64,000 nucleotides of DNA from Macrostomum lignano. Lineage: Eukaryota. The stretch is from the NCBI GenBank assembly GCA_002269645.1, contig NIVC01000013.1:496001-560000 (forward strand), written 5' to 3'. The notes under the pieces are model-generated. The model saw nothing but the letters and a program-made list of their open reading frames with translations. It was not told where the DNA came from and searched no databases. The translations under genes and the position numbers were made by a program. Shown piece after piece: positions 54,334 to 56,383 of this stretch (position 1 is the stretch's first letter; each line of letters opens with the position of its first letter).

Positions 54334-56383
54334 ATGGTGCATCTGCGAAGGTAAGATTTTGCGGAGTAGCCTGGATTTTTTATTGGTGGCAGAGACGCAT
54401 CTTTGAGGCGCCAAACCTGCTGTGTAGGGAGCGCCAAACTTGCTGTGTAGGGGGGCGCCAAACTTGCTGTGTAGGGAGCGCCAAACTTGCTGTGTAGGGA
54501 GTATCAAACCTGCTGTGTAGGGAGCGCCAAACTTGCTGTGTAGGGGGGCGCCAAACTTGCTGTGTAGGGGGGCGCCAAACTTGCTGTGTAGAGAGCGCCA
54601 AACTTGCTGTGTAGGGAGCGCCAAACCTGCTGTGTAGGGGGCGCCAAACTTGCTGTGTGGGGGGGAGCGCCAAACTTGCTGTGTGGGGGGGGAGCGCCAA
54701 ATCTGCTGTGTAGGGAGCGCCAAACCTGCTGTGTAGGGGGCGCCAAACTTGCTGTGTGGGGGGGGAGCGCCAAACTTGCTGTGTGGAGGAGAGCGCCAAA
54801 CCTGCTGTGTGGGGAGCGCCAAACTTGCTGTGTGGGGGGGAGCGCCAAACTTGCTGTGTGGGGAGCGCCAAACCTGCTGTGTGGGGAGCGCCAAACCTGC
54901 TGTGTGGGGAGCGCCAAATCTGCTGTGTAGGGAGCGCCAAACCTGCTGTGTAGGGGGCGCCAAACTTGCTGTGTGGGGGGGAGCGCCAAACCTGCTGTGT
55001 AGCCAAACTTGCTGTGTAGGGGGGCGCCAAACACTTTATTATCATAACATATTATGAAACATTTTGCAGGACTCTACTCGATATTAAAAAGCCGACTGTG
55101 CTGTTATTACTGAGCACGGTTTTGGTTGCTAACTTGAGCAGCTGTCAAGCCATGGAGATTTCTTCTAATTCTGGTTTCCCGTCGTGCCGAACAGATTTTC
55201 AACGCTGGCTGACTGGTAACCTAGAAGCGGCTGGGGATTCTGTTCGGGGATTTTAGTCATTGGAAACTGGGGGATTAGGGCGTTAGTAACTGGGGATTAG
55301 GGGATTAGTCACTAGGACTAGTGACTGGGGATTTGGGTATTAGGCACTAAGATTAGGGGATTAGAGACTGAGATTAGGGGATTAGTCACTAAGATTAGGG
55401 GATTGGTGACTGGGGATTAGGGGATTAGTCACTAGGATTAAGGGATTAGTGACTGGGGATTAGGGGATTAATCACTAAGATTAGGGGATTAGTCACTAAG
55501 ATTAGGGGATTAGTCACTAAGATTAGGGGATTAGTCACTAAGATTAGGGGATTAGTCACTAAGATTAGGGGATTAGTGAACTGGGGATTAGGGGATTAGT
55601 AACTAAGACTAAGGGATTAGTGAACTGGGGATTAGGGGATTAGTAACTAAGATTAAGGGATTAGTGACTGGGGATTAGGAGATTAGTCACTAAGATTAGG
55701 AGATTAGTGAACTGGGGATTAGGGGATTAGTAACTAAGATTTGTGACTGGGGATTTTTGGATTAGTCACTAAGATTAGGGGATTAGAGACTGGGGATTAG
55801 GGGATTAGTCACTAAGATTAGGGGATTAGTGACTGAGGATAAGAGGATTAGTCACTAAGATTAGGGGATTAGTCACTAAGATTAAGGGATTTGTGACTGG
55901 GGATTTTTGGATTTGTCACTAAGGTTAGGGGATTAATGACTGGGGATTAGAGGATTAGTCACTAAGATTAGGGGATTGGTGTCTGTTATTAGAAGATTGA
56001 ACAGAGATGGTTATTATAAACGAAGACATCAGTTCCTGTAATTAATTATTGACGATATACTATTAGTACTTATTAATGTACAAACAGCTGAAGCGCCTGG
56101 ATCACCGATGCCATGGAAAATGAAGCGACGCCATGAAAAGCTGCACCGCAGGACAGCACCAATGTCCAGCTCGACTTTAACAGCCCCATTGCAACCTCGT
56201 CTGCGCCTGCGCCTGTCGCATCTGGTGTACTTTCCATGCGCTTACGGAGGCCTGCCCTATCCCGTTGGCTGCGGCAAGTCCGGCCTGGGGCCGCGGGTGT
56301 TCGTGTCTAGGAAGCGGCGTCAGCTGGTGTGCGTGTGCCTGTGCCCCGCCAGCGCCGCTCTGCCTAATTGCAGCGTCGTTTAA
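54334..56383 (+). CDS. Small secreted Cys-rich precursor of unknown family; exons 54334-54350, 55070-55215, 56088-56383 (459 nt, 152 aa)
   Basis: ATG...AG|gtaaga (phase 2), ttttgcag|G...G|gtaacc (phase 1) and aaacag|CT join into MVHLRRTLLDIKKPTVLLLLSTVLVANLSSCQA-MEISSNSGFPSCRTDFQRWLTAEAPGSPMPWKMKRRHEKLHRR...FPCAYGGLPYPVGCGKSGLGPRVFVSRKRRQLVCVCLCPASAALPNCSVV*. It shows a signal-peptide-like stretch, basic cleavage sites and a GC-rich last exon. Confidence 0.72.
54400..55030. repeat. 22-24-bp repeat GGGAGCGCCAAAC(T/C)TGCTGTGTA (intron 1 of the secreted-protein gene)
   Basis: About 27 copies. Confidence 0.95.
55265..55975. repeat. 21-bp repeat GGGGATTAGTCACTAAGATTA (intron 2 of the secreted-protein gene)
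   Basis: Direct reading, degenerate. Confidence 0.92.

Follow-up and report, generated by a model that had tools for sequence, protein, structure and literature searches.

This paper describes a gene candidate in a stretch of 64,000 nucleotides (nt) of the flatworm Macrostomum lignano (contig NIVC01000013.1, assembly GCA_002269645.1), which in its full length is called the window here. The candidate is located in a gap of about 5 kb between a DEG/ENaC gene and a xanthine dehydrogenase/aldehyde oxidase (XDH) gene, and would encode a protein of 152 residues in three exons. With a probability of about 0.8, it is a genuine, unannotated gene of M. lignano, coding for a diverged paralogue in a small, lineage-restricted family of uncharacterised secreted proteins with six cysteines. 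The assignment as a genuine paralogue is based on homology, on an exon layout and intron phases like those of the annotated gene Mlig026996, and on a ratio of nonsynonymous to synonymous substitution rates (dN/dS) of about 0.24. An earlier note, made on this sequence alone, had proposed a hidden gene for a secreted, Cys-rich precursor at this place and could not assign it to a family. The hidden gene was borne out, being absent from the protein collections searched and having significant homologues with matching intron phases, and the product can now be placed in the Mlig026996/A0A1I8HGG9 family, which itself is uncharacterised.

In a word-indexed search of a collection of 5.8 billion clusters, no match to the 152-residue product was identified at E<=10; the same search also missed the paralogues. 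An exhaustive HMMER (phmmer) scan of 1.84 billion representative proteins, for which the 97 residues of exon 3 served as the query, revealed four true relatives: P0121 (E 3.3e-13), P0122 (E 1.3e-12), P0123 (E 5e-12) and P0125 (E 2.8e-4). The matches cover the last 52 or so residues of the query and are located at the C-terminus of each relative, with an identity to the candidate of 66-70% for P0121, P0122 and P0123 and of 45% for P0125. A tblastn search of the candidate against the Mlig026996 loci gave an E-value of about 1e-17, and by blastn no nucleotide-level similarity was found between the candidate locus and the paralogue loci. For the 48 codons that were aligned with Mlig026996, a dN of 0.36 and a dS of 1.5, the latter near saturation, give a ratio of 0.24. 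This ratio shows that the protein has been under purifying selection since the duplication.

In GenBank, P0121 and P0126 are the hypothetical proteins BOX15_Mlig026996g1/g2 of M. lignano. In UniProt, P0123, P0127 and P0128 are entered as "Secreted protein" of the same species, and P0122 is designated "EGF-like domain-containing protein"; the latter is a fused model of 857 residues, the tail of which is equal to Mlig026996. The accessions of the family are PAA47331, PAA56703 and PAA49465 in GenBank for Mlig026996, and A0A1I8HGG9, A0A1I8HQH8, A0A1I8G223 ("Secreted protein") and A0A1I8HUJ2 in UniProt. The distant homologue P0125 originates from a 1.1-kb Logan contig (L003) of sequencing run SRR18682679; this protein ends with YQPAGGRR before the stop codon (889-914 of the contig), a C-terminal Gly-Arg-Arg of the kind known as an amidation signal, which none of the M. 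lignano members has.

A further phmmer match, P0124 (388 residues), is not regarded as a homologue. It appears to be the translation of a CRISPR-like array, in which the repeats ASMGPRVFVSRK / FNGAASVRLAE alternate with variable spacers; its E-value of 3e-5 is owed solely to eight copies, and the segment GPRVFVSRK is shared with the candidate by chance. A profile search identified no members beyond three already-known sequences, and the family was not found beyond M. lignano and the SRR18682679 contig in a collection of 15 billion proteins or in JGI metagenome contigs. When metagenomes were scanned with the pattern C-x-C-L-C-P, 126 pattern matches were obtained, none of which was confirmed. 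Literature searches gave no paper mentioning Mlig026996 and nothing relevant on Macrostomum prohormones.

The members have a common layout, consisting of a signal peptide, an unconserved linker with a basic pair and a six-Cys C-terminal domain of about 50 residues. By regular-expression search, the framework C-x(8-10)-C-x(16-19)-C-x-C-x-C-x8-C was identified at the extreme C-terminus of the candidate and of all relatives, so that the conservation of Cys spacing, which the earlier note had named as a check, was found throughout the relatives identified. The domain ends 2-10 residues before the stop codon, and its alignment contains 17 invariant columns, including the six cysteines and the motifs F-P-C, Y-P, G-x-G-P, C-x-C-L-C and P-x-C. 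Every relative contains a [KR]R pair between signal peptide and domain, 10-36 residues before the first domain Cys (EKR, HRR and RKR in the relatives); the candidate has KRR at residues 67-69 (56123-56131) and RR at 75-76 (56147-56152), both upstream of the domain. For the candidate domain (predicted local distance difference test, pLDDT, 70) and for P0123 (pLDDT 64; domain 71-80), AlphaFold predicted the same small three-stranded sheet, with the strands ..VYFP.., ..GPRVF.. and ..LVCVCLC... Pfam gave nothing for the product or, in the GC-rich block in which exon 3 is located, for the five remaining open frames, and nothing significant for the relatives. A Foldseek comparison of the two models with the PDB gave no match with E below 1, small domains being hard for Foldseek.

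The exon structure of Mlig026996 in assembly GCA_002269645.1, where the gene is present on two near-identical contigs, consists of exons of 5 nt (ATGGG, donor GGG/GTAAGC), 104 nt and 179 nt, separated by introns of phases 2 and 1. The 104-nt exon encodes the signal peptide, and the 179-nt exon starts at the E-K-R site and carries the domain. The introns between the candidate exons of 17, 146 and 296 nt agree with these in phase and in their positions in the protein. The L003 contig also splices in frame, with a hydrophobic exon of 50 nt that is entered in phase 2, left in phase 1 and joined to the domain exon. The GenBank models for Mlig_3_7 were built from RNA-seq, and any transcript that overlapped a repeat annotation was taken out before they were submitted (PMC5730564); since the models of this assembly come from RNA-seq transcripts, the splicing of the paralogue Mlig026996 is experimentally based. 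The homologous structure of the paralogue shows how the candidate would be spliced, and transcription of the locus is presumed.

Some further features of the related loci were observed. The two Mlig026996 loci (NIVC01002587 and NIVC01004488) share 99.5% identity over about 9.8 kb, falling to about 91% downstream of the gene, as would fit a duplicated (neopolyploid) genome. An 800-bp (CTAT)n array is present in intron 2 of Mlig026996. The introns of L003 are short (191 nt) and without tandem arrays, and the contig has a GC content of 37%.

A mechanical rebuild of the candidate reproduced the three-exon structure with its 17-nt first exon and GC-rich last exon, giving 17 + 146 + 296 nt = 459 nt, or 152 codons and TAA, in frame. 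The coordinates of this model and of the other features of the window are listed in Table 1. Exon 1 was selected as the probable first coding exon, and its phase matches that of the paralogue, which has 5 coding nt in exon 1. The assignment of exon 2 is based on position, phase and signal-peptide character, because the N-terminal part lacks significant similarity to the paralogues; low similarity between family members is common in such regions as signal peptides and propeptides. Open segments resembling signal peptides are scarce in the window (7 out of 347); apart from this locus, their density is about 0.09 per kb and strand. Because such segments are rare, the occurrence by chance of one with a right-phase donor 0.9 kb upstream of the domain exon is unlikely.

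Trans-splicing was considered as the source of the ATG and rejected. The spliced leader of M. lignano is 35 nt long and ends in ATG (PMC8629364). A spliced leader joined to position 55070 would allow six codons to be read before a stop is reached; like its paralogue, the candidate therefore requires an ATG exon that is spliced in cis. No spliced-leader copy was identified in the window. The region around exon 1 (54322-54355) holds CTGCGAAG and ATTGCA(A)TG, both of which are present in the 35-nt spliced leader but in reversed order, probably by coincidence.

Table 1. Features of the gene candidate and of its surroundings; positions are those of the window.
Feature	Position	Strand	Remarks
TATA-like box TATAAAT	54223-54229	+	putative promoter element, about 105 nt upstream of ATG; pattern scan
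Alternative first mini-exon ATGGACGACAG	53938-53948	+	11 nt, starting with ATG at 53938; donor CAG/GTAAAA; in frame, phase 2; enumeration of ATG/donor pairs
Exon 1, coding part ATGGTGCATCTGCGAAG	54334-54350	+	17 nt; M-V-H-L-R + 2 nt; donor AAG/GTAAGA; phase 2
Intron 1	54351-55069	+	719 nt; tandem array of 23-nt units at 54408-55032
Exon 2	55070-55215	+	146 nt; acceptor TTTTGCAG/G; donor CTG/GTAACC; phase 1; putative signal peptide and start of propeptide
Intron 2	55216-56087	+	872 nt; tandem array of 43-nt units at 55315-55977
Exon 3	56088-56383	+	296 nt; 61% GC; acceptor ACAAACAG/C; linker with basic sites, six-Cys domain, TAA at 56381-56383
Conserved C-terminal domain YFPC-x10-C-x19-C-x-C-x-C-x8-C	56228-56371	+	Cys 105, 116, 136, 138, 140, 149
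RKRR	56309-56320	+	furin consensus match; within the domain, at the hairpin turn that joins strands 2 and 3 in the AlphaFold model; this copy only
Two overlapping-adjacent ATTAAA motifs	56425-56436	+	possible poly(A) signals, 42-53 nt past the stop; pattern scan
DEG/ENaC gene	43871-52852	+	stop at 52852; Pfam ASC on 43871-44407, 51287-51877 and 52532-52852
XDH gene	57797-63007	+	ATG at 57797
MFS transporter exon	1414-1953	-	
Homeodomain gene	25555-26142	+	only the C-terminal end of the homeodomain in this open reading frame
Septin	30107-33364	+	

For the N-terminus of the product, a signal peptide is credible. The h-region TVLLLLSTVLVA (55095-55130) has a mean Kyte-Doolittle hydropathy of 2.6 and is preceded by three net positive charges; as a heuristic, the hydropathy maximum over 12 residues is 2.60 for the candidate versus 2.65 and 2.80 for paralogues. 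A putative signal cleavage site follows C-Q-A (55143-55151), which corresponds to A-Q-A in P0123. By these heuristic measures and by its six-Cys C-terminus, the product agrees with the description as secreted and Cys-rich. The KRR/RR region is likely a proprotein-convertase cleavage region, where cleavage would occur.

The most economical reading of the product is a secreted pro-protein that would be cut at the upstream basic site. Transcription would start downstream of TATAAAT, and the two introns would be removed. The protein would then enter the secretory pathway, with the signal peptide predicted to be removed after Ala33, and a proprotein convertase would cut at KRR69 and/or RR76, a kind of site that recurs in all members. 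This would release one mini-protein of about 56-83 residues, or of 76-83 residues for cuts at these two sites of the candidate, presumably stabilised by disulfides, which may act extracellularly as a binding or signalling molecule. If the internal RKRR is cut at all, this would nick only an exposed hairpin and the halves would stay linked by disulfides; the site is not a feature of the family.

A number of observations weigh against a genuine and functional gene of this structure. Exon 1 is ambiguous, the alternative mini-exon joining exon 2 equally in frame, and further in-frame acceptors for exon 3 are present at 56067, 56094, 56157 and 56184. Similarity of exon 2 to the paralogues is not significant, as noted above. 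The linker, which is about 45 residues longer than in the Mlig026996 family, is of low complexity, and the AlphaFold models, based on four sequences, are of no more than moderate confidence (pLDDT 64-70). In addition, the candidate domain differs from that of the family by two insertions of one residue each (Lys after C2-Gly, and Arg/Gln before C3), and by a Leu at the Gly of C-x-C-x5-G-x2-C (CLCPASAALPNC), which precedes Pro-Asn-Cys and is invariant in the relatives. This Gly to Leu change affects a single position and counts for less than the other family features, namely the identical six-Cys framework, the order of signal peptide, basic pair and domain, and the three exons with phases 2 and 1. 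Other differences are two extra cysteines near the N-terminus of the candidate and a furin-type RKRR that occurs only in this copy.

The coding character of the locus was assessed by a codon-usage likelihood trained on 6.3 kb of confident exons of the window, which chose the true frame in 42/42 leave-one-out windows. The proposed frames rank first of six for both exon 2 (score 0.02) and exon 3 (score 0.06). Against the gene stands the overall score of 0.05; with a median of 0.13 for real exons, it falls near their 20th percentile. Scores as good were obtained for about 16% of the GC-rich open segments outside the training set, among them an antisense open reading frame at 56076-56306. The composition of the peptide is biased, with Arg, Leu, Pro, Ala, Gly and Ser being abundant, and RLRLRL and VCVCLC arise from DNA resembling simple sequence, the former from a CGCCTG-type repeat. 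All six frames are mostly open across the GC-rich block at 56040-56420. On the features of the open reading frames alone, without homology, the case for a gene is weak, and the open frames, the biased composition and the similar codon usage of the antisense frame would also be expected of an open reading frame that arose by chance in a GC-rich island and was stitched together by eye. With significant homology specific to one frame, matching intron phases and dN/dS below 1, this explanation is already refuted and can be given hardly any credence.

A silent or decaying paralogue, that is a young pseudogene no longer expressed or functional, is unlikely, though it accounts for several of the observations given. 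No counterpart of the candidate is present among the RNA-derived models in GenBank and UniProt, nor was the protein found in the collection of 5.8 billion clusters, which holds RNA-derived M. lignano models. Loss of an invariant Gly, insertions in the domain, a long low-complexity linker and a weak codon-usage score would likewise fit a gene in decay. However, the frame of 152 codons is intact over three exons with four canonical splice sites, the six cysteines and other invariant residues are kept at a dN/dS of 0.24, and the TATA-like and ATTAAA motifs are found at sensible distances. The missing model carries less weight where transcripts overlapping repeats were deliberately removed from the GenBank annotation, and at such a repeat-rich locus this filtering is a plausible cause of the missing annotation. 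A genuine gene is preferred over a decaying one.

All motifs on which the earlier note had built a peptide precursor were identified in the rebuilt protein: KRR at 67-69, RR at 75-76, C105-AYGGLPYPVG-C116 followed by GK, RKRR at 129-132, and a peptide starting with Gln at 133-152 (QLVCVCLCPASAALPNCSVV). From these, a prohormone of the neuropeptide type was proposed, in which cleavage at KRR, RR and RKRR would yield a cyclic amide peptide or else a two-chain hormone with pyroglutamate at the start of the second chain. The signal peptide and the upstream basic pairs would agree with such a precursor, and RKRR conforms to the furin pattern R-x-[KR]-R, is followed directly by Gln and is located at an exposed hairpin turn in the AlphaFold model. 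The comparison with the relatives makes the proposal quite unlikely. While a [KR]R pair upstream of the domain was confirmed as a cleavage site candidate in every relative, RKRR is inside the domain and in none of them, where SRNRF, SKKGF or GREGW is found instead. The Gln is likewise an insertion unique to this copy, and the proposed pyroglutamate peptide holds C3-C6 of one domain (QLVCVCLC...C). Amidation at GK was not supported either: no G-[KR]-[KR] is present in the candidate, and the Lys is a copy-specific insertion at a place where the relatives have CGSG or CNHG after C2. A single Lys before Ser is not a usual prohormone cleavage or amidation site.

The two proposed products also do not fit the domain. 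The segment of the supposed cyclic amide, C-AYGGLPYPVG-C, is the C1-C2 loop of the conserved six-Cys domain, and release of C105-C116 as a free peptide would split the domain, with four of its cysteines remaining in the second piece. For the two-chain disulfide-linked hormone, the R-x-[KR]-R site at the chain boundary is not conserved, and both pieces belong to one six-Cys unit which is apparently under purifying selection as a whole. A nick at RKRR giving two disulfide-linked chains may occur in this copy, without being a property of the family.

Likeness to insulin/relaxin and to CCAP is superficial, comprising a Cys loop, a basic site and a Cys-rich C-terminal piece ending in C-x8-C. The insulin patterns C-x11-C of the B-chain and CC-x3-C-x8-C of the A-chain were found in no member by regular expression, and no Pfam Insulin match was obtained, which sets the family apart from insulin and relaxin. 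The suggested resemblance to CCAP also fell away: the C-x5-C-amide pattern of CCAP is absent, and the candidate has C-x10-C followed by G-K-S as part of a larger domain. With flatworm neuropeptide prohormones (npp/spp), the candidate shares the signal peptide and processing sites at basic pairs. In contrast, these prohormones contain short, often amidated and repeated peptides between conserved G-K-R/K-R sites, whereas here a six-Cys unit of about 50 residues is present.

One of the UniProt entries is labelled "EGF-like domain-containing", and a true EGF-family ligand, namely a secreted agonist of the EGF receptor like the transmembrane-less L-EGF of Lymnaea, was considered for the pro-protein. 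In both cases the precursor is small and secreted and the product is one Cys-rich domain, and the candidate has no transmembrane segment; the Lymnaea type, however, has canonical EGF spacing. The last 12-14 residues of the domain resemble the C-terminal sub-loop of an EGF repeat, and the likeness, apart from a small, disulfide-rich beta structure as in other secreted proteins, is confined to this part. The relatives match the PROSITE-type EGF_1 pattern C-x-C-x5-G-x2-C, which the candidate does not match with its Leu for Gly. The second EGF signature, C-x-C-x2-[GP]-[FYW]-x4-8-C, is matched by neither the candidate nor the relatives. In a sequence profile search of the PDB, the best matches were EGF repeats over the 14 residues of CLCPxxxxGPNC, at a non-significant E-value of about 2. 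Pfam gave no EGF family for the candidate, P0121, P0122 and P0123 (PF00008 and PF07974 being the EGF-like families compared); for P0125, EGF_2 was reported with E 0.62 and 10.9 bits against a cutoff of 22.1. Foldseek gave no EGF structure for either model.

The canonical EGF spacing is C1-x4-7-C2-x4-5-C3-x8-13-C4-x-C5. The family departs from it with C1-x10-C2-x17-19-C3-x-C4-x-C5. The third Cys is displaced, with C-x-C-x-C on one strand, and the long hairpin is between C2 and C3 instead of between C3 and C4 as in EGF. A true EGF ligand is therefore very unlikely. We describe the domain as one with a C-terminal sub-loop of EGF type in a framework that otherwise has no assignment, and do not call it an EGF domain.

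The candidate is located 1.5 kb downstream of the DEG/ENaC gene on the same strand, and a peptide ligand functionally paired with this adjacent channel had been raised as a speculation. The neighbour is a real channel gene by its Pfam ASC matches. Peptide-gated channels such as FaNaC and HyNaC respond to short RFamide-type amidated peptides. No R-F-G-basic motif of this type is present in the candidate, and no ENaC or XDH gene was identified within about 8 kb of either Mlig026996 locus, so that the pairing of ligand and channel is not retained; we consider it extremely improbable.

For the secreted pro-protein read here, a wider significance can be suggested only with considerable doubt: the family may represent an unrecognised class of flatworm extracellular signalling mini-proteins, which would be released by convertases and carry six cysteines in a framework that is not of the EGF type except for its C-terminal loop. 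Such proteins might serve as hormones, growth factors or mating-related factors, and the internal furin site of this copy would give a two-chain form. To our knowledge, a small lineage-restricted family with this conserved six-Cys framework and exon structure is defined here for the first time, and it is a tractable target for RNA interference and in situ hybridisation in M. lignano. The annotation of a flatworm model for regeneration and reproduction gains a gene that was missing, and the case illustrates that small three-exon genes for secreted proteins can drop out of annotation at repeat-rich loci. No long-standing question is opened by the locus, the readings as a new neuropeptide and as an ENaC ligand not being supported.

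Exon 3 was also considered as a piece of one of the neighbouring genes and excluded, since the DEG/ENaC gene has its stop at 52852 and the ATG of XDH follows only at 57797. For XDH, the first exon is located at 57797-57853, and the intron between it and the second exon is short (about 80 nt). Once this small exon 1 was placed, the exons were identical to the M. lignano protein in UniProt over the correctly spliced parts. Within the DEG/ENaC gene, a WSC domain (PF01822, E 1.3e-10) was identified in an open segment at 45772-46254 (+), between the N- and C-terminal channel exons that match ASC. This segment may supply the channel with an unusual additional extracellular domain, or it may belong to a nested or separate gene. 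Nearby segments at 46595-47049 look kringle-like by eye, yet gave no Pfam match.

A self-BLAST of the candidate locus against the window gave no second copy and no membership in a repeat family. Simple and tandem repeats make up 15% of the M. lignano genome (PMC5730564). In the window, about 38 tandem arrays occupy about 45% of the 64,000 nt; their units, of 4-126 nt, are unrelated and different in each array. Since such arrays are present in nearly every intron and intergenic gap of the window, those in both introns of the candidate are not special. About 14 of the arrays measure 534-673 bp regardless of unit size, and the array at 58291-58910 is another example of the arrays of this window.

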